A stretch of 64,000 nucleotides of DNA from Octopus bimaculoides (Eukaryota), in assembly GCF_001194135.2 (NCBI RefSeq), contig NC_068984.1, positions 11,391,815 through 11,455,814 on the forward strand, read 5' to 3'. Under the pieces are notes generated by a model. The model saw nothing but the letters and a program-made list of their open reading frames with translations, ran no database searches and was not told the origin of the DNA. Below are positions 3,101-61,949 of the stretch, piece after piece. The position numbers and the translations under genes are program-made. The stretch's first letter is position 1. The number at the start of each line of letters is the position of its first letter.

Positions 3101-6100
3101 ATATACAATCAGCTTCTTTCAGTTTTCATCTACTAAGTCCACTCACAAGGCTTTGGTTGGCCTAAGGCTACAATAGAAAACAATAGCCTAAGGTGCTACC
3201 TATTAAAAATATAATCATGATAAAGCTTAGTCTTCTTTGTTTGAACTCTTATTAGCTGCATTATCACAGTATATTTTTAAACCGTGTCTTTATTTCTTCA
3301 ATTCAGGCATTAAAGTTGACATTTGAAGTGGTGCAAGAAAACATAGAAATGTTACTTGATCTAATGCCTGTCCGAATGGTCTGGCGTCCTGTTGCTCAAT
3401 TCAAGCAGCTTGGTGGCATAAGTCTAGTGATTCAGCTGTTAGCTATTGCACAAAACTGGAACAATTATCCCAGCAAGTAAGTTTTGTTTTATTTTTTCTC
3501 TTTTCTAAGGGCTATTTAATGGAGGTGAGATTGTATGACATTCATGCTGTTATCCAAGTATACTAGTAATATGAGAAGTGAATTGGCTTGTTTAAAGGTT
3601 ACTTCTTGTTCTACAGGTCATATGATATACTTGTTTCAGTCATTTGACCGTGGCCATGCTGAAGCACCGCCTTTAGTCAAACAAATCAACCCCAGAATTT
3701 ATTCTTTGTGAGCCTGGTACTTATTCTATTGGTCTCTTTTGCCGAACCAAGTTTCGGGGATGTAAACACACACACAGATACATACATATATAGCAGACAC
3801 TGAGACATGGCACAGATCTCTGACCCTTCAGATCCTGCCAAACCATCTGAACCATGCCAGCCTGGAAACTGTTTGTTAAAAGATTATTATGGTGATATCT
3901 AACGTAGCACAATGTCACAACTTATGTGGAATTTGTTTTTTTTTTTTTTGTTACCTAGTACTAAAAATTCTTTCTAATGTCTTCCTTTTCTTTCCCTGTC
4001 TATTTCACTCTGTAGCAGATCTGTAATGCTAGTTGACATGTAAGAAAATATTAATTACTGTAGAATACTTTACAATAAACTTGAAATTCNNNNNNNNNNN
4101 NNNNNNNNNNNNNNNNNNNNNNNNNNNNNCCCACCCACCCCCTCCATTTTCTGTTTTCTATCTTGAAACTATGTTTGTCTTTTGTAGGTCTGAAACCTTG
4201 TGCAGTGCAATGGATGTCTTAGCAGTCTGTACAATTATGCCTCAGTGCCAACTTGCTATGCTTGAACCCCTCCCAGTAGGCTTGGAGTTTACAGCCTCTG
4301 CTATCAAGTTAGTAACATCTAAAAATTAGTATTTCAAATATTTGTATATTTTTTTATCTCTGCATATTTTTATTTTTTAAGTTTACAAATGCATGGTTTG
4401 CATTTCAAACAGAAATGCATTTGCTAAGAGATCATATATCAGTTCAGTTTATTATTTCATCAGCTGCCTTGTACTTGTGAATGAGCCACGTAATTCTTCT
4501 TGGAACTGGTTGATTACCAGTTTCCATTTCTGAGTTGTAAGAAGACCATCGAGTTGTGAGAAAAAATTTGTCTATAACTATATAAAAATTTACTCAAACC
4601 ACTTCATCTATTCTTACATGCAAAAAAAGGAATGCAGAACAGTAATACTAGTGTGAACAAATGAATTAGTGATTAGCATTTAAATATATATATATTGATG
4701 AAGATATATTGTATGCTAGCCTGGAAAGCAGGTGTAAAATGATGATGGTCTTATATTTCATTATCATTATTGTCATTTTCTGTCTGTTTTCTATGCTGAT
4801 AGGAACCAGGTGAGTCATTTCTGCTCCCCTAGTAAAGTGAATTCATTGTGTTTCAGTTTTAAATTACTCCATTTTTCTGAAGAAAACATCTGAAAAATGC
4901 GCAATGGTGTTAAGTTTTCATAGCATTTTTAAAACAAAAATATTTATATGTCTATAATATACCTATATATGTAAATATGTATTTCCTTCTTTTAAGCATA
5001 ATGATTGGTCTGGCTGAAGGCAAAACTGTTCAAGACCCTGAGGTACAAAAATCTGCTTTAAATGTCATCATAAATTGTGTCTGGGGACCAATGGAAAGGG
5101 TAAGTGTAATATTCTAATTACATATGATAACTGCTGTGAAAAACCTTTTGGCAATTTTACTCTTTTTTTTTTCTATAACATTTTGTGAAATCAAATATAG
5201 TTAACTGTCATCTAATTTAAAGGTATATGTAACCTAGTACATGAAAAATATTTTTTATCATCCTTTGCAGAGTAACATTAAGTGAAATTCATAGCATGCT
5301 GTTCTATCAGCATCCCATTATCATTGCTACATTGTATTACTATCAAAGAAACAACTTTCATTAGATCTATTCACATAACTAATTTTGGTAGCATGAAGTG
5401 GCATAGTCAACGGTCATGGGCTGAAAATTCTTTTATTAGTTTTAACATTTCCAAATTCAAATTTTTCTATGATTCTAGATAAAATGAGAAGCCACTGCTG
5501 TGTATTTTTCTCTGAATCATTGTATGGAGGAGGATTTTCACTAGCGTTCTAATACATGATGGTTGGGAGTTTTAGCTATTGGACTATCAACTCAATGGTC
5601 ATACATTTGAATTATAATTATAGGGTATTTCTAAGTCCATATTGCGATAAAAGTACAATTTCAATCTCTTTGTTCACATTTTAAGTTCTTCCATTTAAAT
5701 AATTTCTACAGAATTTGGTGAACCTCTTAGCCATATCAGCAGAGAATGAAACTATGAAAATATGTTTGATAAAAGCATCAGTAATTTGTGTAGTTCCAGA
5801 TTTAATATATTGTCACCTGTTTTAAAATGTACCAATCCACGGTTTAAAAATTTGGCGGTATTGGCTTAAGTCTAACTTAACTCTTCTGATGTTCAAGAAT
5901 TAATTCTTCATTGTGTTGTAGGATTATGAAACAGCCTTCCATAAAATAAACTTCTAAATTTGTATATATAACACCAAGATGTATTCTCCCTTTACAGCTT
6001 GGCGGTGGAGTAGGTCGATTCAAAGGATCTGGTTCTAAAAAGAGGATTAATTGGAAGGTTGGAGAAGATGTCTTGGGTAAAATGTGGGATGGAATTAGAG

Positions 6101-9100
6101 GAAACAATGGCATCATGGTGAGTTATTTTTGTTTTTGTCTTTTTGTCTTATGACTCTTCATTTGAATGCAATCTGGGGTAACTTGAGGGTTTATGTTTTA
6201 ATAATTCATCATCATCATCATTTAACGTCCGCTCTCCATGCCAGCATGGGTTTGACGCTTTGACTGGGGACTGGTGAACCAGGTGGCGACACCAGACTCC
6301 AATCTGATCTGGCAGAGTTTCTACAGCTGGATGCCCTTCCTAACGCCAACCACTCTGAGTGTGTAGTGGGTGCCTTTTACGTGCCACCGGCACGAGGGCC
6401 AGTCTGGCGGTACTGGCAACAGCCACGCTCAAATGGTGTTTTTTACATGCCACCTGCACAGGAGTCAGTCCAATGTTTTGTTTTGAATGAAAATAAAAAA
6501 AAAAGATGCTGGTAATTTCCCCCACCCCAAAAAGAAATCTTTGATATTATATTTAATTATTTTACCTTCAGTTATCAAATTGAGACAAGTTATTAACCTG
6601 GATCATTTTCTTTAGTATATATAAACATCATGATAAAATTACATCCTAAAAACATAAGACAAGTGTTACACACACACGTAATCTACAATAAATATTGAAA
6701 GTAAAACATTAGATATCTTTCATCTTTTACTTGTTTTGCTCATTAAACTGCAGCCATGCTGGAGCACTGTCTTCAAGAATTTTTAGTTGAATAAGACTTA
6801 ATTGTTGAAGTCTAGTACTTATTCTTTTGGCTCCTTTTGCTGAACTTCTAAGTTACTGGGATGTAAACACACCAACACTGGTTTTGAAACTGTGGTGGGA
6901 AACATACAAAGACACATGCACATGCATACATGACGGGCTTCTTTCAGTTTCCATCTACCAAATCTACTCACAAGGCTTTGGTCAGCCTAAGGCCATAGCA
7001 GAAGACACTTGCCAAGGTATCACGCAGTAGGACTGAACCTGGGACCATGTGGATTTATTTACAATATCTTATTAATCCAATTTAACCTCTATTTCTTCTA
7101 ATACCTTTCTCTTTCATATATCACAGACCAAAAATAAATTTAATTAAGAATAAGGTTGTCTTCTCAATTTGTAAAACAAAGACAATGATTACAAAAATTT
7201 CACCACAACAGTCAGTATATAAACAGATAGCATAACACAATTTAGTACATAAATATATATGTTAAAAATTGTTTGTGGTTAGATAAATATTATTGCTGTT
7301 ATTTGAATTTTGAGTATAATTTGTTGTTTGTATTGTTTTCTAGGTTCTTCTGAAGTTATTATCTCAGAAAACTCCCATTAGCGAAGCTGATAATATTCGT
7401 GCTTTAGCGTGTAAAGTAAGGCAATGTTTTAATATATTCTCAACATAGTTTTTTTATTGTACCTTCTTTATGTCTTTTCAAATGTGATTCAGATACTGCA
7501 ATGATTATTAGTAATAATTATCGTTATGAGGAGTTATTAAAGTTATTTAATTTAATCCCTGTTACTATATTGTGGTATTTATACAGTTACTTGGAACATA
7601 CTCTATTTTATTTGTTTCAGTCATTTGACTGTGGCCATGCTGGAGCACCGCCTCTTTAGTCGAGCAAATCGACCCAGGACTTATTCTTTGTAAGCCTAGT
7701 ACTTATTCTATCGGTTTCTTCTGCCGAACCGCTCAGTTACGGGGACCTAAACACACCAGCATCGGTTGTCAAGCAATGTTGGGGGGGGGGGGTCAAACAC
7801 AGACACACATACATATATACGACGGGCTTCTTCCAGTTTCCGTCTACCAAATCCACTCACAAGGCTTTGGTCGGCCCAAGGCTATAGTAGAAGACACTTG
7901 CCCAAGGTCCCACGCAGTGAGACTGAACCCAGAACCATGTGGTTCGTAAGCAAGCTACTTACCACACAGCCATTCCTATGCCATGTGAATTTTGACAGTT
8001 GGGACACCCTTGTAAAAGTGTTCAACTCTGAAGTGAATCTGCTACTTATTTTCAGATAAATAGATCTTCTTTGTCACGGAACTTAACACAACAAATATTA
8101 GGTTTTTAATTTATGATATTGCAGTTCTGTATTTCTAAGATAAGTTTAGATATTTTTTATTTTTACTAATACACTATTTGGATCTGGGTATTTTAGGATT
8201 GTTTTCACATATTGTATTTGTACATGTGATTATTTCCTTGTGTTTGGACTGCATTCCTAAACTGCTATTGCACTCTCAATGATAAAACCCAGCTTAGAAT
8301 GTGTCTAAATACTGTTTTGCTAACTGCTCACTTTCTCATCTATATTTTTAACTTCATTTGTTGTTTTTTGTTTGTTTATTGTTTGGGTTTTTTTTTTAGC
8401 TTTTGCATCAGTCCTTATTCTAAAATAAATCGTTCACATAGTAGTGGCGATTCTCATCATCATCATTGTTTAACGTCTGCTTTCCATGCTGGCTTGGGTT
8501 GGACAGTTTGACTGAAGGCTGGTGAGCCAGAAGGCTGCACCAGGCTCCAATCTGATCTGGCAATGTTTCTACAGCTGGGTACCCTTCCTGATGCCAACCA
8601 CTCCGAGAGTGTAGTGGGTGCTTTTTATGTGCCACCGGCATGAGGGCCAGACAAGTGGTACTGGCATTGGCCACGCTTGAATGGTGCGTGATCGTTGCCA
8701 GTGCCTGCTGGAATCAACTTTGATTTTCCTATCTCTAGAGTTGGTAAAATAAATATTAGCCATGTACTGAGTTAGTTAATACTTATTAGTCTTTTGGAAC
8801 TTAGTAGCCTTGTACTAGTGAGAAGCATTTATATTGAAGTTAATCACAATACTGAGTCTTCTATGTTCTGAGTTCACATTTTGCCAAAATCAACTTTTCA
8901 TCATTCTATATATGTGCTACAAATTTTTTAACATTATTTAATATCAATAAATTCATTATTATTATTAAGACAGTTCGCTGGCAGAATCGTTAGCGCATCA
9001 GGCAAAATGCTTAGCAGAATTTCATCCGTTTTTGTGTTCTGAGTTCAAATTCCGCCAATGTTGACTTTGCCTTTCATCAATAAATTAAGTACCAGTAAAA

Positions 9101-12100
9101 CACTAGAGTCGATGTAATTAATTAGTCCCCTCCCCACAAAATTTCAGGCCTTGTGCTTTCAGCAGAAAGGATTTTTATTATTATTATCTTAAATGATTTC
9201 TTCAAGTATTTCCTTCTAAAATAATGTTGATAAAACTTTCATAATAAGTGTTAAATATAATATACTATTTGTAATAAAAATTAAAAACATTTAAAATCTC
9301 TTAAATAAGATTGTCTTTACTTTCTTAGGCTCTTGTTGGTTTGTCTCGGTCCGAAACAGTTCGGCAGATCATTGGGAAACTTCCTTTATTCAATAATGGT
9401 TTATTGCAACGTGAGTGTCGATATTTTCACCTATATTTTTGTCCATCTGTCAGTAAATATTTGTGATTATTAAATTCTGAAAGAAATATCACTTGATGTA
9501 CTATGTGGTTTTTATTGATCTTATCAATTAAGTTTTGTAATTTTTGGGGTTTCTTTGTAAAGTTTTAATGGATGCCATTCTGAAGTAACTTTGTTGCAGT
9601 AATTCGGTAGAGTTTGGATTCAGATATTGCATTAATTTGATAATTGGTATAAAAACATAAATAAAACATCAAATTTCGGTTACACCACAACTGATGTCTA
9701 TAAACCCAATATTGATGTCTATCATAAAATCTTTAAATGGTTTTGAACTATGCAAACTTCCAAAGTAAAGTGCGTTAATAAAGTACTTTTATCTTTATTA
9801 AATAGTTTCCACAAATATTTATGGGTAGGATCAGAGACAGAAATACACAGACTGAATATTTTACTTTACATCTTTAAACTGTTTTCTTTTAATACAGAGC
9901 TTATGAAAGAACCTGTTCTTCAAGACAAGCGACAAGCACATGTCAAATTTTGCAAGTATTCCAATGAATTAATTGAACGTGTGTCTGGAAAACACCATAA
10001 TGCAAATATTGAAGCTTCTCTTCAAGACATCAGGAAGGTAATTGAAAGATGTATGGTTTTTCCTGGCTTCAAAAAAAAAATATATATGCATAGATTTGTA
10101 TTGTGTCACTGAATAAATATTTTTATGTTGATGGGAGGAGGTGCTGCTGTAAGTATTTGGAAAATAAACAGTCCTGTATTTGTCATGTGAAACAGCTCAG
10201 AATTGAAATGTGTAGATATAATATTGAACTACCAGCTAAAACAATTTAAGTTTAAATTCATTGAAGATGTCTCATTGTGTATTTGGATGGTTAGACTTAA
10301 TTCTATAGGTTTCAGTTGATTTAGTTGTCAGAAATAGATACCAGACAGTCTGGGGAAATTACCTGAGATAGATTGGCCTCTTATACAGGAGATTTATCTC
10401 TATTTCAGTTTATATCCTGAAACAGCTACCAGAAAAGATCTTTTGTTTTTATGAAACGAGACATTAGTCTGTAATCTGACAAGATTCCATGAAATTCTTA
10501 GTATGTAGTTTGTATGTAACCCAGTGCCCTACTCTCAAGGAGTTATTCAAGATATCAATATATGTAACCACAATCACTCAAAATGTTAATTTAACAAATG
10601 TTTGTGTGTTCATTAACTGTCAAAACAGTTTGATGCATATAAAATATAGGATTTTAGGTTGATGTTTTTGTCAGCCATGATAAGGAGGATCTGTGATCAA
10701 AGGTATTTTAGCTATGACATTGCCCACGTTTGGATGGTGCTTTTTATGTGCCACCAGCACGGGGAGCCAATCAGGCAGCACTGAGGTGCTTATTGCATGC
10801 CACCATCAGTGGCAATATTAATTTATTTGTTGAAATAAACAGTTTTTGTTTGAATTAATTTTGAAAATGAATTTAGTAAAATAATTTTGCTATTAATTAA
10901 GCTGGTTTTCAGAACATAAATTAGCATAAAATTTTCATATCACTTTAAACCAGGGAATTCATATCATAGAGTCAAACGCAGGCTGTGATGGGTTGTTATC
11001 TTCCGATAAATCATTTAAAATTTTTTCCAAATGCTTTAAAAAAATTATCCTTTCTTGTTTTCAAGGCTGATATTGTAGCTCAGACGAAAATTACTTTCCA
11101 GAAGAGAGAATTATTTCATTTGATCCACGAGTATCTTTTGTCTGAAGGTTAGTTTTTTTTTTTTTTTTTACACTCTTAAAACATTACCTATCTTTGCTAT
11201 CACCATCATCATAACCTCTGCCAAGGAAAGAGGTTCTGTTTTCATTGGCGTTTGTTTGTCTGTCTGTGTGCAAAATAACTCAAAAAGTTGTGAACGGTAT
11301 TCGATGAAACTTATAGGAAAAGTTAGTAATGACACAAGGAACAGATGATGAAATGTTGGTCATGATCCAGGAATTTTTATGGATTCTTGAAGAATTTTTC
11401 ATTTGTTATATTTACTTTACATGAAGTATTACAATGTTACGTTCTTTGATTATCTCCCTTCAAAACACGTTCATCGTTGTTGTTTCCAAAGTTTATTTTC
11501 GTTTCTCTATTAGTAATTTTACTTGCGTATCTATCTTAAAATGAACTGGTTGGCAGAGGATGACATGACAAACCTTGACTATTGGGATCGACTCAAAAAG
11601 CTCAGGCTTTGCTCCCTCCACCGCTGCTGTGAGCTCTATATCATGTATGATGTGGAAAATATTCCATCAACATTGCCCATCTTTAAAATTCGTTCAAGGC
11701 TTCCCCCCCCCCCCGTGCTATCTGTCCACTACAGACTGTGTATCTCTTCCAGGTGGTGTTATTGAATTAGATATGGCCTGAGTCAACTTCGGCCGAAACT
11801 TATCTAAGTAATCTAATCTATGCTGTAACCTTTTAATCAAAGCATCACAACATCGGTAGAGGCTGATCTCTTAACATTTCTGATGGTCTTAAGTATAAGA
11901 AAAATTATTAAAGATTTATATAGAACCACAGTCAGAGTATGTCTATAAGCTGTGTTTAGACCTGGTTTCTATCCTCAAACTGTTCCATTTTGTAGATGTA
12001 ATTTTTTAATTTTTTTTTTTAATAAAGCACTCCAAAATTAGAAATATCAAAAATCTGCAACAATCTTGGTCCCATGAGTATCAGATAATGGATTTTCAAC

Positions 12101-15100
12101 TGTGTAAAGAAAATGATTGTAGTGATTGTAGTTTTGATGGTTTGGGAAATTGGGCAATTTTCAGCATGCGTGTATATGGGTAGAAATTAGCTGCTTGGCA
12201 GAGGTCTGCGCTCTCTCAGTGCTTTTCTAGTTGTCTTTACATCCATTTTTTCCTATGTGGTGTTTCCATTGAAAAGCAGTCTCACTAAATTTAACTTTAT
12301 ATTCTTTTGTTTCAGGTTGTGTCAATTCAGCAACTGCCCTTCAGACAGAGGCTAACTTACCTTGCAATATGTCCATTCCTACAGTCCATCCAACAAACCC
12401 GCTGATTAACCCAATTATGACCACACCAAAAGCTGTAAGATATTTTTCTTTACTATCTCTAATATGGGAAATGAGTGGTGTTTTTTGTTGGCTACTAATA
12501 AAGGATTATTTTAATAATGGCTTTATTACATCTGAATAAACAAATAAATGTAATAGTTCTTAATGAGATACTTTAATTAATATTTTGCACTGTTGTAAAA
12601 TAGATAAAACAAATTGCGAAAGTATTTTTTAATATAAATATTACAGTTGTGATATTTACTCATCTGTGGTTGCCAAAACTACAAACTCTGGTTGCTTAGA
12701 AATTATGAAATACAATTGTATTGGTTTCTTGAAAGTTAATATTTTTGTCAAGTGCTATAGAGCAATTGTAGTGAAAGATGAAGCTACTACCTTTTATGTA
12801 TGCATGCAAACCCCTTATTTCAACCAAATGAAACTCTCATTAGCTGATCAGTCTTTTAATAGCAAGACATATCAAGATCGCCTATATGCAAAGTTAGGTC
12901 TCTCATAAGCTTTAATGTACTAAAAACCTTTTTTTCCTAAATATGTTCTGCTGAGGGGTATGCCCATGTGTTTTTAATGCTATCAAATATGATATTTAGT
13001 TAAACTTTCATCTGTGAAAGAATTGTACACAACCCAATTGAAACACATGTTTATTGTTACTCATTTGTTTACTTGTTTGTATTTGCAGTCACGTCAACTG
13101 AGTCCATTACCAACTAGTCACAATTCTAACCAAACCCCATCTCTATTATCACATTCCTCTGGTGCCAGTATCCTCAACACCAATGGCACTTTAGGTCCTG
13201 TAAAGTTCTCACTTAATCGACACTCTGCTGCTTCTCCTGTAATTGCTTCAACACCAACTATCAAAGTAAGGGCCACATTTTGTTTTCCTCTTATTTCAAT
13301 TTAGGTAATTTGTTAATCGTTTCAATGTCCCTAAAATATATATCATCATCATTTTTACAGCCATTTTTCCCCGCTAGAATGTCTTAGATAAAAGTTTGAA
13401 GCAGATTTCCTACAACTGGTTGCTCTTTCTGGTGCTGATCCATACTTGTTTTTCAAGTAAGGAATTATCTCATTCCACCAGTTAGCACATGTCTGTGGAT
13501 CTATGGAGAAAATAAACAATGTCACCATCTGTTGATTAGCCAGACAATGTTCTGGCTCAACATTCACCACACCTCCACACCATCTGCATTTAACATCCAC
13601 TTTAGGCTGGTACAGTTGGATGTTTTGATCCAATAAGTCAGAGAACTATGTCTGGCTCCAGTGTTCCAGTTTGTACATGGCTTCTACAACCAGGTGACCT
13701 TCCTAATGCCAACCACTTTACTGAATATACTGGGTGCTTGCTTTTTTTTTCATGGTACAAGCACTAATAATGTTGCCGTGTTGCTTGCAACATTAAAGAT
13801 ACCCCTTGACTGAGGGTGGGGGGGTAGAAGATTGGATGGGCACTTCAAGTGAAATATTGATATGGTGGGGTAAGTTGGGCATACATGTTTATGATGGGCT
13901 TCCTTGAAGTTTCTGTTTACCAATTTCACTCAGTAGATATCAGGTGGCCCAGGACTATAATAGCACATCAAAATATATTTTTAAATGCTTCAAACTTATG
14001 TAGATATTTTGTGTGTGTGTTTTACTTCATACTGTCTGTCTAAAAAGTTACTTTCACTCATTTAATCATTTCCTCTTTTCAAATAAATATATAATCGATT
14101 TGTTTCCATTTAGGCCAACCAGGCAGCTAATGCCAGGTCTCAGCTTACGAAAGATCGACTAGAAGACATGACCATCATGAAAAATATGATTCACAAGCAC
14201 CATTCTGATAATGAGGTAACATTGGATGGCATTGTTACAGAATATCTCAGGAAACAACATGCACTCTGTAAGAACCCCATGGTAACGTGTCCCCCAATGT
14301 CACTCTTCACGTAAGTGTTGACCAATTTTCAATTTCTCCGCTTACTTTAAGCAGGAATGGGAGGGTATCTGTTAAAACAAAAATCACTGGTATCATTGAA
14401 TTAGAAAATAAAGGCTGGAGAATAAATTCCAGTATCATCATCTTCATTTAATGTCCACTTTTCCATGTTTGCATGGGCCAGATGGAATTTACTGAGGTAG
14501 ATTTTCTACAGCCAAATGACCCTCTTGTCACCAACCGATACCTGTTTGTAAGTGAGGGAATGTTTCCCTATGACCAGACATGATTTCTTAGAATATTGGA
14601 AATGAGTGACATTCATTTACAACAACCATGTGATGTTTACACAAGGAGACACTAAGTAGGCCTCTTTCAGTTTCTATCTACCAAATCCATTTACTAGGCT
14701 TTGGTCAGCCCAGGACTTAAGTAGAAGGCACTTGTCCAAAGTACCACACAGTGGGACTGAACCTGAAACATTGTTAGCTGGGAAGCAAATGCCTGCTCCT
14801 GAAAAGAACTGAATTTTATATCTTAGCTTGATGAAACCAACTATTTTTGTTCATTAAGCCATTATTCCAGGAGACATTTGTATTTAAGGGGTTGATTTGT
14901 GATGGTCTGAATTTTGGCTTTGTCTTTTTTAATCTGTCACTCTTGAGAAGTTTGATCATGTTCATAAAAGTTTGTGATTTCAGAAATTGTATGACAACCT
15001 TGTAATATTGTAATAACAAAATTTCATCTCATAATTATCAAATTCTGAAACATTTACATTTACATCAGAAACTATTGAACAGAGCTTTATGGAGGGTACT

Positions 15101-18100: not shown

Positions 18101-19811
18101 TGGCTGTGAACATCAATCCAGTTTGTGAAAATTATTATTACCTCCACCTTAGCGAAGGCAGCGGTATTGTTTTCGGTCATGTTAGTTTGTCTGTGGACAA
18201 GATATCTCAAGAACCACTGGATGGATTCGGATGAAACTTGCAGGGATGTTTGGCCTTGTGACTGGCATGAACTGATTAGGGTTTGGGATCGATTCAGTAC
18301 CCTGGGTTATTTTTCCTTTTTTTTTTTTTACTTAATTTTTGAGAGTGGTTGGGTTCATTTTTAGTATTTTCATTTTATGAGAGCAATCAAGTTTATTTCA
18401 GATATTCTTATTTTTAAAAATCATCTCTTGCTAATCGTTGAGAGGACGTTGGTGTTGCCTTGGCAGAGGTTAGCACTCTCTGAGTACTCTTGTTTATCAT
18501 TTATTTTTTTTACTTCCAGTCTTCCAGTAATTTTCTTCTTCTGGGTACATATTCCGGTGATTTAAAGCCTGTTAATATTCAAACTGGAGAGGTAAGTTAG
18601 TGTTTACTACACTTTTATTCTTGTATAAGAGGATTCTCTTGGCATTGTAAACCACCGAGCTATTGGTCTTATACCACTTAGTTCAGTAATCCACATTTGA
18701 ATCATTCTCTATCATTGTTCCTATCTGCTCTGCTGTCAAGTCCTGTAGAATTGGATTAGAACTCAAATCTTCCCTTAAGGTGCTGATACTTGATTCACTC
18801 AGCTATTAAAACACCCGTTTCATATATCTTTTATTTTTTACTTGTTTCAATCATTAGCTTGTGACCATGCTGGGGCACTGCTTTGAAGCATTTTAGTCGA
18901 ATGAATCCCCAATGCTTCATCATCATCATTGTTTAACGTCTGCTTTCCATGCTAGCATGGGTTGGACGATTTGTCTGAGGACTGGCGAACCAGATGGCTG
19001 CATCAGGCTCTAATCTGATCTGACCGAGTTTCTACAGCTGGATGCCCTTCCTAATGCCAACCACTCCGAGAATGTAGTGGGTGCTTTTACGTGCCACCGG
19101 CACGAAGGCCAGTCACATGGTACTGGCAACGGCCATGCTCAAATGGTATTTTTTACATGCCACCTGCACTGATTGTCAAACGGTGGTAGGGAAAACAGAC
19201 ACAGATGCATACACACACACACATATTTTGCATCTTATCACGGTACCACCACTTTTTCATAAACTCATATTCAGTCCTTTTAAATATCTTCCTCTCAATA
19301 TTTATAACTCATAGACCACTTACGTAACATATTGTCCAAATCTTGCTCCTAAGAGGTATATACTTCTGCAGCTCCATTTATATCCCCCATGTTTACTCAT
19401 TTATTATGAAACTGTATTAATTTGATTATTCTGACTGTTTACAGGAGGGCCGAAGTTATAACTGTCACTCATCTCCTATCACAAACTGCCGACAGACAAA
19501 GGTAAATTATTTCTTTCTACTACAAACTTATATAACGGTGGATATTATTATTATGCAAATACTATAGAACAGCAGTCGAGCTATATATATATATTTTTAT
19601 ATATGACGTTGACCACTAACGTGGACATTTAATGTGCTAGAAATAGATCACATCTTGTGTCTAAAAAGACCTAAATTGTTCTCAACATGAAATATAGCGT
19701 GATCTATTTCTAGCACATTAAATGTCCACGTTAGTGGTCAACGTCATATATAAAAATGTACTTTAATCCCCTGAGATTGCAGATACTGTTTCTGAATCTC
19801 TTTGATTTTTT

Positions 19812-19849
<38 letters not shown>

Positions 19850-22800
19850 TACTTTCAGTTTCTAGTTTGTTTTCATTTCATTTCACTTGTGTAAGGTTTT
19901 TTATTTTTTACTGTAGCTTTAATTTCTGATGTTATTGGCTGCTTTGAGATTCAAAGACTTGAACAGTTGTTAATATCCAGTATTTTGTCTCCAACAAAAT
20001 CTTTCAGAAATTACTTCCTGAGAATCTTTTATCTTAAAATTAATTATTATTTGCTTTTTTTCTTTCTTTCTTCCTTAACAGGATGGTAACCTTCTGGTTA
20101 CTTCAGCATCATGGGGAACACCTCTTTCTTCTTTGTGGAAAAGTTTAGACAGACTTGAAAACCAGTAAGTGGTTTTTATGTTTCACTATCCAGTATATAT
20201 ACATTACTCATTTTAATGATTTGAGAAGAGCCTAAATCAAGTGTCTATTGTATTAAAGCAACATGAAAATAAATTTAGTAAAGTTTATTTGCCAACAGAA
20301 TGTGGCAGTCCTATACAAGGATGATGTTACTGATGTTTAGCCCCAGGAAAACATATTTTCCAGCTGGCTACTGACACACTGTTTGTGTTCATATAGCATA
20401 AGCGAGGAAAGTCATTGCTTCCATCTCCAGCCTTTGTGATACAGACCTAGGTTTCTGGGTTGTTTCCCGTCCTCAGTGCGAAATAATCACAGGCTAGTGA
20501 TGAGGGCTTCTTTGACTTGCTCATACTATATACTTTCTAAGCGACACACAGTTGCTGATCTTGTAAAGAGATAAACAGCTAGTTTTAAATCTCTGAGCAA
20601 GAGATATGCAGTAACAGTACTGAATTGTAGAGTTTATTTGCCAACAGAATGTGGCAGTCCTATACAAGGACGACATTACTGTTGTTTAGTCCAGGAAAAG
20701 AATTTTTCCAGCTGGCTACCGACAGTTTGTGTCTGTATAGCATGAGCAAGGGAGGTCATCACTACCATCTCCAGCCTTTCTGATGATACTCACAGACCTA
20801 GGTTTCTTTCCACCCTTGGTGCATGACAATCACAAGCTAGTGATGGGGGCTCATACTATATATTTTTTAAGTGACACACAGTTGCTGATCTCATAAAGAG
20901 AGAAATTAGTTTTAAATCTCTATATAACAGTTTGATTCGCTTCCATGCTACTTCATTTCGCAGGCCCCTAATGGGAGCCCGATTCCTTCAGACTTCAAGT
21001 TGGAGGTATGACTGGTGTGGTTCAGAATGTGGTTTTGAGTTCAGTTCCACTACAGGGCACTATAGGCAAATATCTTGTACTATAGCTCCCAGGCCAATCA
21101 AAGCCATGTGAGTGGATTTGGCAGATGGAAACCGAAATAAGCTTGTCATATATGTATGTCTGTGTGTGCATGGAGGTGTGTGTATGTCTCCTTGTTTTGA
21201 CATTACATATTAGTTGTACACAAGTGTCACTCTCATTGAAGCAGTGTCCTTCATTTCCAATCTTCCACAGAAGCAGGTGATGGTTAATAACAAGAGCATC
21301 CAGCCATTGAAAATCTTCTTCAGTAAATTCTGTCTGATCCATGCAAGCATGGAAAACTAGACATCAAAATGAGAACGATGGTGTGTGTGTGCGTGTGTGC
21401 GCATATGTTATTTTGTCAGTGAAAATGTCTGATGTTCCCAAAACAATCAAAATTATGCTTTCAAAGTGTTTGATGATATGTCTTGAAAGGATGTCTTCTT
21501 TTGTAATTTTCAGGAAAAATTTCCCTGAAGACAATTATATGGAATTTAGCAAAAAGGTGCAGGATAAACTCATTGGAACGCGGGAAGAGAAAGCTTATGT
21601 AAGTATATTTGGGAATGCATGTGTGCACATGCATGTTTTTTTGGGGTTTTTTCCACTTCCGAACATGCAAATGAAGGTAATGTTTTTTTTTTTGTGGGGT
21701 TCAGGAGTGGCACAAACTCTAGCTACGCTAGTGTCCATTCTTGCTATATTTTGTATAGATATATGTGATGAAGCATTTTTTGTCAGATATTTTAAAGCAG
21801 TGCTTCTCAAACTTTTTTAACTATTGGCTCTCTTGTACTAACATTTTTTCAGTGCCTCCTTACAATATTTTTGTTGATATTATATTTTACTATCCTACTT
21901 TAGACAATACAGCATTTTTTACTCTGTCTAACAATACTGATTTATTATTTTAGATAGTGTGGAGTTCTGTATTGTTTGACAGTACAAAACCATACTCTAC
22001 CTTAGAGAATTTTAATACTGAAAATATTTTACTATAGCTTCAGAATACTAAATTATCATCCCTCTTTAGATAGTGTAATGTTTTAGTTGTTTCTTTATTA
22101 AATCTTTTCATATATTCGGCTTCCTTATTTAACTTGCAAATGTTTTTCTTCTCCTTAGATCTATGACATAAACACAGGTCAGCAAATAATGGAAATATTT
22201 GATCAAGAAAAGGCCAACTACTACACATCAAACCGAGCCACATTTGACCCCTCTGATGATTTGGTGCTGAATGATGGTGTGTTATGGGATGTAAGAGTTG
22301 GTAAAGCTGTACATAAATTCGATAAGTTCAATGCAGCAATAAGTGGACTTTTCCACCCAATGGGACTGGAGATCATCATTAATTCAGAAGTCGTATCCTT
22401 TATCAAATTGAAACAAAATGTATAGATTTCTTTAATTTTTTTTATCTCTCACTTGTTTCAGTCATTTAGATTGCAGCCATGCTGGAGCACTGCTGTGAAA
22501 AATTTTAGTCAAATGCATCAACCCCAGTATTTTTTTGTTTAGACCTGTTACTTATTCTATCATCCTCTTTTGCCAGACTGTTAAGTTATGGGGGTGTAAA
22601 TGCAGCAATACCCATTAAGTGATGTTGAGTGGGGGAACACATATATGTGTATGTTTATATATGACAGGCTTCTTTTAGTTTCCATCTGTCAAATCTGCTC
22701 ACAGGGCTTTGGTTGCCTTGGGTGTCTTCAGGATAACTCTGAACCATGTAGTTGGGAAGCAAGCTTCTTACCACATAGCCAACAAATATTTTGTCATGAA

Positions 22801-24237
22801 TGAGTGTCCTTATGAGTGAAGCTATGTCCTTCATCTCTGGTCTTCTGTGAACATGTCTGATCCAACCTATGCAAGCATGGAAAAGTGGACATTAAAACAA
22901 CAATGATGATGATAAGCGCTGTCACGGCTGTCTTATTACAAAGTTTGTTTTGCAATCACCTGGTTTTGTGTTCAGTCTTGCTGTAGCAGTGGTTCTCAAC
23001 TGGAATCCATATAAGATTTTGTTATTAAAATTTAAGTGAAATAAATTACTTGTACTTCTACAATTCACAAAATGTTTTATCTTTTATACAATTCCTAATA
23101 ATATTATAAAAATACAGCAGGATTTGTTTTATATACAGCAAATGGCTATGGAGGCCCAGTGGAATAAAATAGGAATCAAAGGGCTCCCTAGGCCAAAAAT
23201 GATTAAGAACCAATGTGCTCTAGCCTTGTCTTCTGGTGTAGTCTTCAGTCAGACAATGCCTTGTGAGTGAACTTAGTTGATGGAAACTGTGAAGAAGCTC
23301 ATCATGTATGTGTGTGAGAGAGCATTAAATATCAATACAAAGTGTTGTTATCGGCAGCATCTGAATGGCAAACACTGACATTGTTTACTTTCTCTGTTGA
23401 ATAAATGCTCCATAGTTTAGCAGGTGTGTATCAATTGGCAGAAAGAAAATAAACACCCAACTTGGAAAACAATTAGGGATTGGTCGCAGGAGAAAGAGAC
23501 ATAAAAACAGTGATGATAGTGTGCCATGGCATTGATGTTTTGTGTTGATCTATAATATACAGTAATTGTCTAGTTTAGTGCAGTTTCTATGGCTAGATGC
23601 CATTCCAAATGCCTACCACTTCACAGTGTGTACTAGGTGCTTTTTACGTGGTATTAGCATCAGCACTTTTTACAAAGTATAAATGAATATCTATACTCTT
23701 GGAGTGGTTGGTGTTAGGAAGGGCATCCAGCTGTAGAAACTCTGCCAGATCAGATTGGAGCCTGGTGCAGCCTTCTGGTTCGCCAGTCCTCAGTCAAATC
23801 GTCCAACCCATGCTAGCATGGAAGGCGGATATTAAAGGATGATGATGATTGATTAGCTACAGGAAAGATAGTAATGAAGTTGTTGTTTTAACCATAGTAA
23901 TGTTGACTATAACACATGTTCCTTAACAATTTGTTCAGTGGGATATGAGAACATTTAGACTTCTTCATACTGTACCTAGTCTCGACCAATGTCAGCTGAA
24001 CTTCAACTACACAAATGAAATAATTTATGGCAGTAAGTACTTGTCTTTTTTTACTAAATTCTATTTATATGCTCGTTTAAATGTATTTCTTTTTCAAATA
24101 AACATGGCTCTGTAGTTAAGAAGTTTGCTTCCAAACCACATTGTTTCAGGTTCGTTTTCACTGCATGGTACCTTGGCCAAGTGTCTTGTGCTATAGGTCA
24201 AACAAATCCTTGTGAGTGGATTTGGTTGAGAAAGAAC

Positions 24238-24272
<35 letters not shown>

Positions 24273-27200
24273 CTCCTTGTCTTGATGGTTGTAAATGGAT
24301 GTTGCTGCCATACAAGCGGTGTCATTTGTTTTTAATCTTCCGTGAGAATATGGACAATAATATTTCCCATGAAAATGTTTCATAGGAAATACTTCCTTGC
24401 TTGGAAACAAGAGTTAGTAACAGAAAGGGCATCCATCCATAGAAACTCAACAAGTCCTAACTAACCCATCTTCAGCATCGTCATCATCATCATCCAAACG
24501 ATTTTGACTTGGTAACAAGTACCGAACTTTTGCTGTTTTGGGTGCCTATGTAGTTGGACACCGTCTTGATCTTGCCGCTCTTGAACCAGCAAAATATCAA
24601 GGATGTGACAAGTGGAAGGAGAATGGGCTGCACCAACATGGCTGGTACGACTCCTCTCCAGCTAAGTGGATTGGAACAATGTGAAATGATGTGCTTTGCT
24701 CAAAGACACAGCCTGCTACCCTGGCAGCTTTTGGACCCAGAACTCTAACTTCTAGGTCATGTACAGATTGTGTAAAAGTGCTATGATAGCTTATCATTTT
24801 CATTTAATATACATTTTCAATGCTGGCATGGGTTGGACGGTTTGACAGGAGTTGGCAAGCCAGAGAACTGCACAAGGCTCCATTGTCTAGCTTAGTGCAG
24901 TTTCTATGGCTAGATACCCTTTCAAAAATGCCTACCACTTTACAGTGTGTACTAGGTGCTTTTTACGTGGTATTAGCATCAGCGCTTTTTACAAAGCATA
25001 AATGAATATCTACACTCTTGGAGTGGTTGGCGATAGGAAGGGCATCCAGCTGTAGAAACTCTGCCAGATCAGATTGAAGCCTGGTGCAGCCATCTGGTTC
25101 GCAGTCCTCAGTCAAATCGTCCAACCCATGCTAGCATGGAAAGCGGACGTTAAATGATGATGATTGATTAGCTATAGGAAAGTTGTAAAGACAAAGAAAT
25201 TAGGGTTTTTGTTGGGGTTTTTTTCCCCTTCCACTAATTTCTTCCTACCATTCTATGCAATTTGTGTGTGTTAATATATTTTCGTTTGTTTATTTTGTAA
25301 ATGACGTGTATTAGTAAATGTGTTTCTGTCTCTCCTTCAGCAATACACATGTTAGATGAACGTCGACGGGACAAACGGTACAATAGCATATATGCTTCTA
25401 CATTCAGAACATTTGATTCCCGAGACTATAGCTGCATATGTAAGTAAACTGATTTATTGATTGTTGTATGATATTGTATAGAGTTGGAGTTATATTGTGT
25501 GTGTACATGGCAGTGTTATAAAAAAGGATTATTTTAACATGGCGCACAAACTTTTTCCTCAACCAAATAAAATATTCATATCATTGAAATCTTGAAGCTA
25601 CAAAAATGCAGGATTAATTCCAAACAATGTCAATAAAAAAGCATCACATTTGACAGAATGAATTGAATGCTAGATGGTTAAACAGCTACTGTGATAGAAG
25701 TTGCCTGTGTAAAATTTAAGTTTGTCTTTTTCCCAGCAACATATGATGTCAAGTCAAGAAGCATCTGTAACCTTGCTGCAGACACCCGAGAGTATCATAT
25801 TGCAGTAGTTGAGGTAATCGATTTTGTTTGGTTGCTTTTTTGTTTTTTAATATGTTTCATTAGCCTGAAGCCAATTTACATATTTTACCTGCTCCAGTCA
25901 TTAGACTACAGCCAATTTACATATTTTACCTGCTCCAGTCATTAGACTACAGCCATGCTGGGGCACTGCCTTGAAGTATTCTTAGTCGAATGAATTGACT
26001 CCAGCACTTTTTCTGTTTTGTAAGCCTAGTACATATTGTATTGGTCTCTTTCACTGAATTGCTAAGTTACAGAGACATAAACACATCAATGCTTGTTGTC
26101 AAGTAGTGGTGGGGGACAAACACAGATAAAAAGGGGCACACACGCCATATGTTTGTGTGTGCATATATATATATATATCCTATTCTACTCTAGGCTCAAT
26201 ACCATAATATATTTAGGAAACAACATAAGCAGTCAGCAAAGTATTGATTTAAATGGCTGTGTACTTAAGAAGTTTACTTCACAGCCATGTGATACCTGGT
26301 TTTATCCTACTGATTGGTGTATTGCCTCAGGTTAACCAATATTTCATAAGAATGGAATTTAGCTGACAAAACCTGTGCAGAAGCCTGTAGTGTGTACACA
26401 TGTACATGCATTCTTTTTTGCCAATTTGTATCAGTAAAGAACCAAAGAAAAATAAAAAAACTACTGCTCCTCAAACAGTTATTTGCAGTATTAGTTCTGT
26501 ACTGAGTTACAGGCACTTCCTGTTAGTCTCATTACCTGAAACATCATAAACCCAATGATTGATATATTAAAAACCTATAACTATCAATGGGATGGCTTAC
26601 CATTCGTGATAAATATAAGCAAATGATTTAGAAGGCAATTGGTTTTAGAAAACTGCTATCTGGTTTGTTGTGCTCCTGAGCATTATATACAATAAGCTCA
26701 TTATTATCAATGACAAGCTGACAGAATTGTGAGAAGAAATGTTTTGCAGTATTTCCTTCGGCACTTTGTTCTGAGTTCAAACCCCACCAAAGTCAACTCC
26801 ACGTTTCATTCCTTTCCAAGTACTGACGTTGATGTGATCAACTAACCCACTCTCTCTAAAATTGCTGGCTGTGTGTCAAAATTTGGAAAAGTAAGGTAAT
26901 GAGCTGGTGGAATTGCTGGCACATTAGTCTAAATGGCTGGCTGTATGTCGTCCAGCTGTTTATGTTCTGAGTTTAAATCCCATCAACACCCACTTTGCCT
27001 TTCATCCTTTCAGGGTCAATAAAATAAAGTACCGGTCAAGTACCAGGGCCAATGTAATCAAGTAGCCATCTCCCACTGAAATGGCTGGCCTTGTGCCAAA
27101 ATTTGAATCCATTATTATCATTATTTTGGTTTGGTTCAGGTTCGGTCTTATTCCTGGTAGGAATTATATGGATAATGGGTTACTACTTGTGATCTTAGGT

Positions 27201-29238: not shown

Positions 29239-31169
29239 CCATTATATGTTGCAAATGCAAACTTACTAGGTAAGAAATAATGGAAATTATTTGAAATCTC
29301 TTGTCTCAAAATATTTTCTCTCTTCATCCAAAAACCAGACTTTGACACATACGTAAGTGTGATGTTACATAACCTTGAATATGAAAGATGTGTGGAGACA
29401 AGCATGATCTGAAGTTATGTAATGTCATTTTCAAAGGCAAGTACGGATTCTAAGAGATTAGTTGAGGTGTTAATGGCGTCGACTGAAATGAACAGGGGAG
29501 ACAACTGTGCTGGTACAGATATAATGTAAATGGCGGATGTTCTTGGTTGAGGTTAAACAGGCCATTTAGCCTCTCAGACGAGACAGGTGTTGTATAAAAT
29601 AACTAAAAGTGGGTCAGGGAACAATAAAATATCGATCAGGCTCCCTTCGTCGCAAACTTGCATATGGGTCTTTTTTTTTTAGTTTTTTTCAGGTTTCATA
29701 TTTTGCAGTTTGGTGTTATTCATGGCTACCTGAAATCTTTATATTCTCTCTGTTTCAACAGCCGAGTCTGTCTAGATGTAAATATGTACCACGTTCAGAT
29801 ACAGCTCCTAGCTTTATGCACAGGGTGTGAAGTATTCTGTTATCTTGCTATGTTGAAGCTAAAACCTAAGAATTGCTGAAGAGGAGACGAATTACCACTT
29901 TCCAAAGTGATGTCAATAGGGCAAAACAGCCAAACAATTGGTTTCGTTTACATTATCACTTGTGTATGGTAAATGAATAACTGATAATATTGCCTAACAT
30001 TGTGAGAGATATTTTAATGTGTGGATAAGCCTACAGTACCTAATGCTCAAAGATTTAAATGACCAAGTGAAGGCCATGCATTAGTTCTCATTCATCATTA
30101 TCATCATTTAACGTCCGCTTTCCATGCTAGCATGGGTTGGACGATTTGACTGGGGACTGGCAAACCAGATGGCTGCACCAGGCTCCAATCTGATCTGGCA
30201 GAGTTTCTACAGCTGGATGCCCTTTCTAATGCCAACCACTCTGAGAGTGTAGTGGGTGCTTTTACGTGCCACCGGCATGAGGGCCAGTCAGGCAGTACTG
30301 GCAACGGCCACGCTCAAAATGGTGTTTTTTACGTGCCACCTGTCTAGTAGCACTGGCAACGACCTCACTCGAATGATTTTCTAAATGTGCCACCGGTACA
30401 AGTGCCAGTATCAAAATTACTGAGATACAGGATGTATTGTTTTATAGATTACGTGAACATAACATCACTGTTGCCCACAGTGTCAACACCAAATCATCAC
30501 AGTTGTACAATTATATTACAATTAAATAATGGGGAAAAAATCATTAAAGTAATTAAGATAAAATTATCAAGAGGAAAAACCCATAACTACCAAAGAGAGA
30601 ACTAAAGAGGAGCGGGGCAAGTAATAGGTTGTAACACCCCAGAACAAATGTCCTGTTTAGCCACGCCTTGCAGACTATGATTACAAAGGCATTTCCACAA
30701 AGAATGGCCAGCGACACTCATTACAGCAACCACACCACCTTGCAAGGTTCAAGTCTCAGATGAGCCACAGTTATCCTGATTTTGCAGAGGAAATTGGCAA
30801 TGTGAGATCTGAGAACAACTGATGTCTTGACAGTGACCAGCACAAACTGATAGCGGCCAGTCAGGCTCCTGTAGCCCTATCTTTTGTTAATTTATTTCAA
30901 TACATCCAAAAATTATCCACTTATTACATTTCAATAGTGTTATTTCAGTTAATGATATCTTCAATCTAAGCACAAGATCAGAGTAAGTACTGAACTAACA
31001 GGTTCCAACTTTTCCAAAAGAATATAACAATGCAAATAGTGAAAGCAAGGTAAAGTTGTCGAATCTGTACATCATCATCGTTTAACGTCTACTTTCCATG
31101 CTGGCATGGGTTGGACGATTTGACTGAGGACTGGCAAACCAGATGGCTGCACCAGACTCCATAAACAAT

Positions 31170-35731: not shown

Positions 35732-38700
35732 GTAAAATATAACTACAGTGTTTTTTTGCTTTTTAATGCATGTAGCGGCTGGAGTAACGGGTACGGACTT
35801 ATTAGAGTAATGAATTGGCCAGATTAGATTGTTATTCGATAATTCCATATACAGTAATCCCTCAGCTTATCGTAAGTGTTACGTTCCAAAACCCTCCGCG
35901 ATTTGTGAAAACCTGCGATGTAGAAAAAAATATTGTACTGTATATTTTTAAAATTTTTATAATTTGTATATATTTATTTTATTATAAATGCAAAACAACA
36001 CCATTGAGGAATCGACGTAAGCAAATTAAGTATCAGAGAAACACGGTTTGGGCTTTTACAGAATTAGCTTTGTTGTTTCGTGAAAGAAAAAAGAATTGAT
36101 ATATTTCACAACTTGTATAATGTAACACAGTTCTTCACTAAGTTCGACTTCCTACTTGCAATTTCGTTTTAGATACAGAGTTTGGTTAAACTAAAGCGTT
36201 TGACCCGAGCAAAAAGAAAAATAGTGTAATAGGGGTAAAACAACTTGCCTTAAATGAATATGAAAAAAAATGCGCGCTCGCGAACGGGGGGGGGTGAGAG
36301 GACTCGGAACATTCACATCGTGAATGTTCCGAGTCGCCTCACCAGAGCCAAGAAACAAAAGAAAAATAGTGGAATAGGTGTAAAACAACTTGCTCTAAAC
36401 TAATATGAAAAGAAAAATGCGCTGGGGGAGAGGACTCGGAAAATTCACATCGTCAGTTTTTCTTTTAATTAATTATTGCCCTCTGAAAATTTCAAATATT
36501 GCAATTATAAAACTAAGAAGAAACCACTGTTTTTACTATATTGCAGAAAAGATAGCTGCTTGTTTAGTGTTTTGAATGGTAAAGTCAAATAAATCTTAAT
36601 CTACAATTTATTTTAAAGAAATATCTTCTGTATGTAAAACGAAAGTTCATTTTACACTTTACCACTCGTAACTGCTCGGCAGTACATATACTAAAATTGG
36701 AATGTTTACAAAGCACACACGTGTAGTGTTTATGTGTGTACTGCTATGTAAACAAGGTACATTGACATCCCAACGAGGGAGCCTCAACGTGGTCGCTCGA
36801 CCTGCTAGAATTAGCCGTCGAATTTGTCACACCCTTATCCTAAATAAAAAAGATTTTTTTTTTTAAATAATGATCACTACTAAAAATTCTTTCATCGTAA
36901 GTCTACTCATTCTATACTGACCTAGGGCTAAACAACAAGCTACTTTGATTAAGAACTAATTTCATCTGCTTTTTTAATTAAAATGTATTAGCGATAATTA
37001 TAGGTCCTCGAGTAATTTATTTAACCGAATGAATTGAGGACATAATGGAGAATAGAGTAGGTAACTCAATATCAAATAAGTTCAGATCTTCAGACGTCTG
37101 TGTTAACTGTGTATTGTTGTTCACCAACATTATCCAAGCGACACCCTAAACGGCAAGCAAGTCTTACGTCTTATTTACACTTATCTTTTACTGTGCATAT
37201 AGTGTTTCTAACAAAACTTGTAATCTTGAGGAGGAGGAGGGCGCGTGTTGATAATATCGCCGTCAGCATTTGACTGATACTTTATTTCATCGATCCCGGA
37301 GAAATGAAAGGTACAGTTGACCTCGGTGGGATTTAAACTCAGAATGTGAAGTGTTCGAACAAATACAACGCGGTATTTTTAACAGAAAATAAAACATGCA
37401 ATTATAAATATAACATTATTCCAACCACGAATATGAGAAAATAACCAACCGTAAAGGTGGTTATTTTCTCATATTGGAACAAGAGTATAGACATCATGCT
37501 ACAACATTTCCCGACTTGTCTATATTTCCTTTCACCACTAATGTACAAAATTTAAACTAAACATTAGTCAGAATAATCTCTTGGCACTGCCCATCTTCCT
37601 CCAAATGATAATTTCTTGAAGTTCCATTACTGCACCCTAAACATACTCCTTCACTATTGTAAATAATTTTAGTCATTTTATAGAAACCTTATATTAATAT
37701 ATAGATTCAGATTGTTTAGTAGGAATCCAACCCCATGGTTCCGGGTTCAGTCCCATTGCATCCCACCTTGGGCAAGTGCCTTCTACTATAGCCTTGGGCT
37801 GACCAAAGCCTTGTAAGTGGATTTTGTTGATGGAAACTAAAAGAAGCCCATCATATGTTTATAGATATGTGTGTATGTCTTTGTGTCTGTGTTTGTCCCC
37901 CACCACTGCTTGACAGTTGGTGTTGGTGTGTTTACATCCCCATAAACTAGCAGTTCAGCAAAAGACTGATAGAATAAGTACCAGGCTTACAAAAGAAAGT
38001 CCTGGGGTCAATTCATTTGACTAAAAATTCATGAAGGCAGTGCCCCAGCATGGCCACAGTCTAATGACTGAAACAAGTAAAAGATAAAAGATTTTAATCA
38101 TCTTTATTTCAAACATTTTCCTTTCAAAAATCATCATCATCATCATCATCGTTTAACGTCCGCTTTCCATGCTAGCATGGGTTGGACGATTTGACTGAGG
38201 ACTGGTGAAACCGGATGGCAACACCAGGCTCCAGTCTGATTTGGCAGAGTTTCTACAGCTGGATGCCCTTCCTAACGCCAACCACTCAGAGAGTGTAGTG
38301 GGTGCTTTTACGTGTCACCCGCACGAAAATGTAGAGTTTAATCCTAAATTCCAGAACTATAGCATCATCATCATCATGATTACATATATTTCTATGTTCC
38401 AGCATGGCCATATCCAGTGGCTGAGATTGCTAAAACATTAAAAGAATATCTTAAATATATTTGAAATAAACAGCTAAATGCACAAGCATGGCTTTGTGGC
38501 TGTGAAGTTTGCTTCCCGGCTATGTGGTCTCAGGTTCAGTCCCACTGCATGGTACTTTGGGCAAGTATCTGCTCCCTTAGCCCCAGGCCAACCAAAGCCT
38601 TGTGAGTGGATTTGGTAGATGGAAACAGAAAGATGCCCATTGTGTCTGTCTACACTTACACTGAGTATTCTGACCATGACAATCATGTTTTTTTCCTATA

Positions 38701-61061: not shown

Positions 61062-61105
<44 letters not shown>

Positions 61106-61949
61106 TATGAACAGCAATTTGCAATGTTTCACCAAAAAAGAGAATTACAAATGTCACTAAATGTGACTAGGGTGTTAGGAAACACCTACATTGCTAGAAA
61201 TAAGAACTAAAGCACTCTAATGCTATAGTTAACGCACATGAATCAAAACATACACTAACAGGGACTTTAATTGTCCGAAATATGCTGATTGAGAATTCTT
61301 GATACTGACGTCAGTATAAAATGCTGTTTATACTAATTTTATATACACACATTAGCAAATCATGAAATCATCTAATAATTTGGATAATGGAAATATAAAT
61401 ACTAATAGCGAAGCAAGCCCAGAAAAATCCCAACATTCGAGCGGGCTTAACTGATGAGGCAACTGAAATTGCCAAAACTGATGTGGGTATTAAGAAATCT
61501 CGATCAGCATTTTTCAGACAAGTAAGGTCCCTGTTAGTGTGTATGTTTTCATTCATGTGCGTTAAGTACAGCATTAGAGTGCTTTAGTTCTTATTTCTAG
61601 CAATGTAGGTGTTTACTAACAGCCTAGTCACATTCAGTGACAATTATATGTATGTGTGTGTATGTGTATATATCATCATCATTATCGTTTAACGTCCGCC
61701 TTCCATGCTAGCATGAGTTGGATGATTTGGCTGAGTTCTGGCGAACCAGATGGCTGCACCAGGCTCCAATCTGATCTGGCAGAGTTTCTACAGCTGGATG
61801 CCCTTCCTAACGCCAACCACTCTGAGAGTGTAGTGGGTGCTTTTACGTGCCACTGGCACAAGGGCCAGTCAGGCAGTACTAGCAACGGCCAATCTCAAAA
61901 TGGTGTTTTTTATGTGCCACCTGCACAGGAACCAGTCCAGCGATGCTGG

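Follow-up and report, generated by a model that had tools for sequence, protein, structure and literature searches.

Is the intron at 22393-23938 of the DCAF1/VprBP gene removed by the minor spliceosome? The gene lies in the 64-kb stretch of DNA analysed here, which we refer to as the window, and the intron interrupts the region that encodes the WD40 propeller. The original prediction had singled it out as a U12-type intron because of its donor and its branch-point sequence. By reading the intron boundaries directly, scoring them against the other introns of the gene and comparing the same codon boundary in other genomes, we conclude that 22393-23938 is very probably a genuine U12-type (minor-spliceosome, GT-AG) intron.

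Splice signals and junction of the intron

The hallmarks of U12-type GT-AG introns are an RTATCCTT donor and a TCCTTRAY branch site about 10-15 nucleotides (nt) from the 3' end, and distances up to the low 20s are tolerated between the branch site and the 3' splice site. The elements at this locus are as follows (a slash within letters marks a splice junction).

22159-22392, plus strand: upstream exon, part of the WD40 propeller; 78 codons (IYDINTGQQ...), phase 0 at both ends; aligns to human DCAF1 up to I1279
22393-23938, plus strand: very probable U12-type intron (GT-AG subtype) of the DCAF1 gene; 1,546 nt, phase 0
22393-22401, plus strand: U12-type 5' splice site GTATCCTTT; 9/9 to the U12 consensus, 3/9 to CAG/GTAAGT
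22423-22425, plus strand: in-frame TAG reached on retention, after 10 intron codons (gta tcc ttt atc aaa ttg aaa caa aat gta)
23919-23927, plus strand: U12-type branch-point sequence TTCCTTAAC; 8/8 to TCCTTAAC
23937-23938, plus strand: 3' splice site AG, the first AG past the branch box
23939-24032, plus strand: downstream exon, starting tgg gat atg aga aca ttt (WDMRTF); its own donor, gca/GTAAGT at 24033, is ordinary

Direct reading places the last base of the upstream exon, which ends aat tca gaa gtc (N S E V; ...INSEV), at 22392, and the terminal dinucleotides of the intron are GT at 22393-94 and AG at 23937-38. Between the TTCCTTAAC box and the intron end at 23938 there are 11 nt (aatttgttcag), which puts the candidate branch adenosines, 23925 and 23926, at a distance of 12-13 nt from the final base of the intron. 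The donor, branch box, 11-nt spacing and intron ends given in the original prediction agree base for base with this reading. Its phase-0 junction NSEV/WDMRTF is likewise borne out by direct reading and by translation of the two flanking exons, which supports both the phase and the reading frame on either side.

The host gene

We next ask how firmly the flanking exons can be assigned to DCAF1. The joined exon pair 22159-24031 (95 amino acids) matches solved human DCAF1/VprBP structures, 13 distinct chains in all, with E values from 2.5e-42 to 4.4e-41, and 93 of its 95 residues are aligned. Chain 7v7b_A, of 1,507 residues, is matched over residues 1218-1310, and the junction falls at I1279/W1280 (...iinTEI/WDLRTF...), in agreement with the human junction NTEI/WDLRTF given in the original prediction. 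For the exon-pair fragment Pfam returned nothing beyond weak, generic beta-propeller matches; DCAF1_helical and DCAF1_4th are found upstream in orthologous loci.

757-28904, plus strand: part of the DCAF1/VprBP orthologue covered by the window; it starts at about human residue 443 and runs to the stop past the acidic tail

Beyond the exon pair, tblastn with a human DCAF1 probe gave 23 collinear plus-strand exon matches between 757 and 27652, equivalent to about residues 443 and 1401 of the human protein; we take them as leads to the location of exons and not as a database test. As 757 corresponds to about residue 443, the window begins in the middle of the gene. At the other end, the acidic C-terminal exons run on to a stop near 28904, with an exon structure in the acidic tail that is resolved only roughly. 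The same holds for 11150-14125 (about human residues 862-1003), the low-complexity middle of DCAF1, where candidate exons rich in Ser, Pro and Thr are seen in the open segments 11569-11778, 12273-12536 and 12993-13301 and the splice sites are ambiguous. A separate observation concerns the acceptor of the first mapped intron (…TTTAAAAAAAAAAAG/gtg at 2329; 2305-2329), which follows an A-run and has a pyrimidine fraction of 0.39; either it is unusual, or the mapped boundary is off by a few codons.

Comparison with the other introns of the gene

Simple spliced mapping placed 21 other DCAF1 introns, making 22 mapped introns in all. We scored each against GTATCCTTT (9 positions), against CAG/GTAAGT (9 positions) and, at 6-30 nt from the acceptor, against TCCTTAAC (8 positions). 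The intron 22393-23938 matches the U12 donor at 9/9 positions, whereas none of the 21 others exceeds 6/9. Conversely, it matches the U1-type sequence CAG/GTAAGT at only 3/9 positions, against 6-8/9 in the others. Its branch box scores 8/8 at 11 nt from the intron end, compared with at most 6/8 elsewhere. The donors of the 21 others are GTAAGT (11), GTGAGT (3), GTAAxx, GTACGT, GTTAGT and GTTTGT. The claim that the other 26 introns of the gene have ordinary donors therefore stands for all 21 that could be mapped, while a total near 27 is plausible and not fully confirmed.

Within the whole gene span, the single plus-strand RTATCCTT is the 22393 donor; a consensus U12 donor is therefore absent from all other DCAF1 introns here, whatever the exons at 11.1-14.1 kb may be. 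The motifs by themselves are not enriched in the 64-kb window, with 6 copies of RTATCCTT seen against 5.15 expected and 3 of TTCCTTRAC against 1.44. The evidential weight lies in where the motifs are placed and in their conservation, not in enrichment. A rough estimate from shuffle frequencies puts the joint chance of such a placement at about 1e-7 for a gene of about 27 introns.

Other occurrences of the motifs were considered and rejected. The TTCCTTAAC box recurs at 20071-20079, where it is a decoy in the pyrimidine tract of an aag/GTAAAT intron (donor 19502), 0 nt before its acceptor AG. This decoy (20071-20081) illustrates that the branch-box motif is uninformative without the right spacing and donor. 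The plus-strand ATATCCTT sites at 34320 and 49053 lie outside DCAF1 and have no recognisable exons adjoining them.

The same boundary in other genomes

To the signals within the window we can add those of orthologous loci, drawn from metagenome, Logan and NCBI assemblies. The protein search returned single-exon fragments of open reading frames rather than full-length eukaryotic DCAF1. We compared 193 such fragments from eukaryotic contigs, each reading from the upstream exon into the sequence that follows it. The continuation is VSF in 94 and VSL in 47 (141 together), as GTATCCTT (GTA TCC TTN) requires; a further 12 continue VSS and five VSY, both compatible with GTATCCT variants, and four continue VR.... 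The fragments that run directly into WD... number 20 of 193 and reflect either the lack of an intron or a complementary-DNA source. Since 'VS' alone also fits GTAAGT, the DNA was fetched for 12 fragments, yielding 13 loci (L001 to L013; one fragment, P0139, gave both L009 and L010). We call vertebrate-type those loci whose exon is 92-100% identical to the human one.

L001, L002 and L003: donor GTATCCTTT; box TCCTTAAC 11 nt from the AG; introns of 394, 8,273 and 589 nt
L004: donor GTATCCTTA; box TTCCTTGAC at 13 nt
L005 (GCA_052426985.1), 339-340: intron-less, ...GSAV WDIRTW...
L006, 421-488: U2-type intron at the same position, GTAAGA...T10AG, 68 nt
L007, 3302-3385: U2-type intron at the same position, GTACGT, 84 nt
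L008, vertebrate-type: donor GTATCCTTC; box TTCTTTAAC; 134 nt
L009 and L010, vertebrate-type: donor GTATCCTTT; box TGCTTTAAC
L011, vertebrate-type, 7892-8391: variant donor GTATCCTCT; weak box GGCCTTGAC 12 nt from the AG
L012 and L013, the closest relatives of the window: donor GTATCCTTT; box ATCCTTAAC 17-19 nt from the AG; 528 and 541 nt

A U12-type intron lies at the identical codon boundary in 10 of these loci, nine of them distinct, and where DNA was fetched for VSF, VSL or VSS loci, all ten had a GTATCCT donor. The donor is identical over 8-9 bases in L001-L004, L008-L010, L012 and L013. Across the ten, the distance from box to AG is 11-19 nt and the intron length ranges from 134 to 8,273 nt; in each of four loci of 20 kb, this donor is the only plus-strand RTATCCTT. 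The exon of L008 shows 100% identity to its human counterpart over the last 62 residues of the latter. The 12 VSS fragments suggest that the donor variant of L011 may be common to a whole species group. Together with the sequence criteria, these ten loci support the U12-type reading of the original prediction.

The comparison also bears on the exact junction. In the intron-less orthologues (L005 and the 20 read-through frames) the residue count across the junction is unchanged, E/A-[IV]-W-D, and because that count is kept the exact junction is supported.

The closest relatives, L012 and L013, are 95-97% identical to the window in amino-acid sequence, and their introns can be aligned with each other over their full length. 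Between the window and L012, nucleotide similarity within the intron is limited to the first 9 nt and the last 3 nt, so at this distance the splice signals alone are conserved. That the donor and branch box have been kept while the rest of the intron diverged points to selection on the signals. Judged from the whole set of loci, the intron is old, with a U12-type intron at the same boundary in many other animal genomes including those with vertebrate-type DCAF1, and it appears to have been converted to a short U2-type intron in a few lineages and lost in others.

Alternative readings

We weighed three other explanations of the locus. The first holds that the major (U2-type) spliceosome removes the intron and that its U12-like motifs are relics or coincidence, as in lineages where minor splicing has gone or is being lost. 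We regard this as very unlikely. The intron does end in GT-AG, the pyrimidine fraction by its acceptor is not unusually low, and conversion does occur, as seen from the short U2-type introns at the same position in L006 (GTAAGA, followed by a T-run) and L007 (GTACGT). Against it, the donor fits the U1-type consensus at 3/9 positions while every other mapped intron reaches at least 6/9, the donor and branch box are both perfect and correctly spaced, and the same signals have been kept in the two closest relatives although the rest of their introns has diverged from the window, which argues for selection on the signals. In addition, molluscs are reported to be relatively rich in minor introns (PMC10639083).

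The second explanation places the true donor elsewhere, at the GT of 22390 or 22420, so that GTATCCTTT would belong in part to the exon or fall within an intron with other boundaries. Both alternatives are in frame with the acceptor at 23938. However, the 22390 donor (gaa/GTCGTA) is almost without consensus and drops the Val or Ile found in every orthologue, the intron-less ones included (E[IV]WD), whereas the 22420 donor adds nine residues (VSFIKLKQN) that are absent from all orthologues. Both give lower alignment scores than the 22393 donor, and neither accounts for the conserved GTATCCTT that stands exactly at the boundary in ten other loci. We consider a shifted donor even less probable than removal by the major spliceosome. 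Least credible of all is a non-functional copy or mis-assembly in which the apparent intron has no splicing significance: N gaps are present in the assembly and the middle of the gene (11.1-14.1 kb) has not been split into exons, but the 23 exon segments that were mapped are all open and, from residue 443 through to the C-terminus, collinear with DCAF1, the splice sites of the mapped exons are frame-compatible, and no gap lies in or near the intron.

Several points weigh against our assignment of the intron to the U12 type and to DCAF1. Both the junction and the dependence on the minor spliceosome are judged from DNA sequence only. The tblastn mapping with a human DCAF1 probe serves only to locate exons, and the database check covers the flanking exon pair only. 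The label vertebrate-type is based solely on sequence identity with the human exon. Nor does the pyrimidine fraction at -20..-3 discriminate: at 0.72, compared with a mean of 0.76 (sd 0.11) in the other introns, it adds nothing to the case, and the TTCCTTAAC branch box is itself rich in pyrimidines. Finally, an Rfam scan of the 64-kb window found none of the minor small nuclear RNA (snRNA) genes U11, U12, U4atac and U6atac.

Predicted splicing and the outcome of retention

From the signals described above we infer which spliceosome acts on the intron and what becomes of transcripts that retain it; the mechanism proposed here follows what is established for minor splicing in general. U11 snRNA would first pair with the 5' splice site GTATCCTTT, and U6atac would do so afterwards. 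U12 snRNA would pair with TTCCTTAAC and bulge the branch adenosine, 12-13 nt upstream of the AG, and the AG would be selected through its short fixed distance from the branch box. Excision would then join ...INSEV to WDMRTF... in phase 0.

If the intron were retained, translation would stop after 10 extra codons, 31 nt into the intron. The retained product would end before the position that corresponds to human W1280 and so lose about the last third of the crystallised WD40 domain together with the acidic tail. The statement in the original prediction that retention reads into a stop at 22423-22425 and truncates the WD40 propeller thus follows from the sequence. Since five or more exon junctions follow further downstream, nonsense-mediated decay would probably act on a retained transcript. 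A more speculative proposal, which we think rather unlikely, is that the intron is not just passively inherited: its U12 type would have been kept since before this lineage split from the vertebrates because minor splicing that is slow or regulated, acting through retention, the stop and decay, sets the dose of the CRL4 substrate receptor DCAF1.

Relation to known minor introns

How does the intron compare with minor introns already described? In the mouse, Dcaf1 has been validated experimentally as a minor-intron gene; its minor intron is in phase 0, and ablation of U11 leads to retention of that intron, mis-splicing and lower DCAF1 protein (PMC12956336). Our literature search on DCAF1/VPRBP and U12-type introns returned nothing relevant beyond that study, and the intron number or coordinates in human or mouse were not found. 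The window intron shares with the mammalian one the gene and the phase, and the vertebrate-type loci L008, L009/L010 and L011 carry a U12-type intron at exactly its boundary, human I1279/W1280; equating the two introns is based on the phase and on these loci, not on published coordinates. The disruption of the protein that is predicted for retention of the window intron has been demonstrated in the mouse after U11 ablation.

There are also differences. At 1,546 nt the window intron is much longer than those of the vertebrate-type loci, which measure 134-500 nt. It also differs from the mammalian DCAF1 intron in that interspersed repeats make up two thirds of it. Its branch box is a perfect TTCCTTAAC, compared with the weaker TTCTTTAAC, TGCTTTAAC and GGCCTTGAC of the vertebrate-type loci.

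As a class, U12-type introns are known to convert to the U2 type or to be lost in some lineages, and phase 0 is their under-represented phase. The phase 0 of the window intron agrees with its mouse orthologue. All the sequence hallmarks and the deep positional conservation of U12-type GT-AG introns in general are also found in the window intron, whose architecture is no different. The conversion (L006 and L007) and loss (L005) typical of the class are both seen at its position.

The window intron is the expected orthologue of a known minor intron, real but ordinary, and quite possibly it is already contained in published minor-intron data sets. In a survey that covered over 3,000 eukaryotic genomes, minor introns were found in Octopus sinensis and molluscs were described as relatively enriched in them; mollusc minor introns, those of Octopus sinensis included, are conserved with other animals (PMC10639083). 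No new question is opened by the present case, Dcaf1 being a known minor-intron gene in the mouse and cephalopod and mollusc minor introns having been catalogued genome-wide. It adds one further data point on the age of the DCAF1 minor intron. At this position the intron is of the U12 type in vertebrate-type and several more distant animals, of the U2 type in two loci and absent in others, and this combination of retention, conversion and loss is the usual pattern for minor introns. The minor-intron status of spermatogenesis genes has been described as stable mainly within chordates (PMC12956336). The DCAF1 intron is of the U12 type in many sequences that are clearly not vertebrate-type, and if the window comes from a protostome, DCAF1 would be a counter-example to that trend. 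A practical consequence concerns annotation: predictors trained on GTAAGT donors can misplace the junction, which is correctly 22392/23939.

Repeats inside the intron

A blastn comparison of the intron with the window identified about 1,000 of its 1,546 nt (about 65%) as interspersed repeat, in six segments with copies on both strands, and so bears out the earlier remark that the intron has tolerated several transposable-element insertions. The unique sequence comprises the first ~34 nt and the last ~61 nt of the intron, and both ends hold splice signals; the interior can vary freely. The repeat-derived parts, all from blastn and without assigned strand, are listed here.

22427-22722: interspersed-repeat segment; up to 10 diverged copies (65-86% identity), on both strands
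22735-22801 and 22854-22917: short repeat-derived segments; 2-4 copies elsewhere in the window
23037-23206: repeat-derived segment; 1 other copy in the window
23226-23316: repeat-derived segment; 8 other copies in the window
23564-23877: composite repeat containing a ~159-nt unit, 23691-23849, that resembles a short interspersed element (SINE)

The 313-nt composite at 23565-23877 gives the best repeat match in the window: a copy at 24882-25191, within the next DCAF1 intron, shares its orientation and is 92% identical. Its ~159-nt SINE-like unit (23691-23849) ends in a GATGATGAT run and occurs in at least 10 copies of 85-92% identity on both strands, among them ~2790-2919, 6202-6366, 8456-8614, 18919-19077, 30094-30252, 38139-38298, 60905-61062 and 61675-61833; the unit itself has no Rfam or tRNA match. 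Scanning the whole 64-kb window with Rfam at the gathering score gave no match, and hence no known RNA hosted by the intron.

Other features of the window

Runs of N, marking assembly gaps, are found at 4090-4129, 41098-41714, 43619-44333, 51986-52402 and 63201-63420, none of them near the intron 22393-23938. Downstream of DCAF1, the open segment 35309-35824 (plus strand) has a Pfam FGE-sulfatase (sulfatase-modifying factor 1-like) match with an E value of 7.8e-14; a neighbouring SUMF-like gene probably has its first coding exon here. Further along, an open frame at 46056-46487 (plus strand) matches Pfam DUF7083 (E 3.8e-19) and is accompanied at 46987-47725 (minus strand) by long open frames that have no Pfam match; both are probably retroelement remnants. 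A remnant of a mariner/Mos1-type transposase lies at 62100-63143 (minus strand), with Pfam matches to HTH_48 and Transposase_1 and a weak one to DDE_3. It is divided into two reading frames, split at about 62372-62376, and adjoins the assembly gap at 63201-63420.

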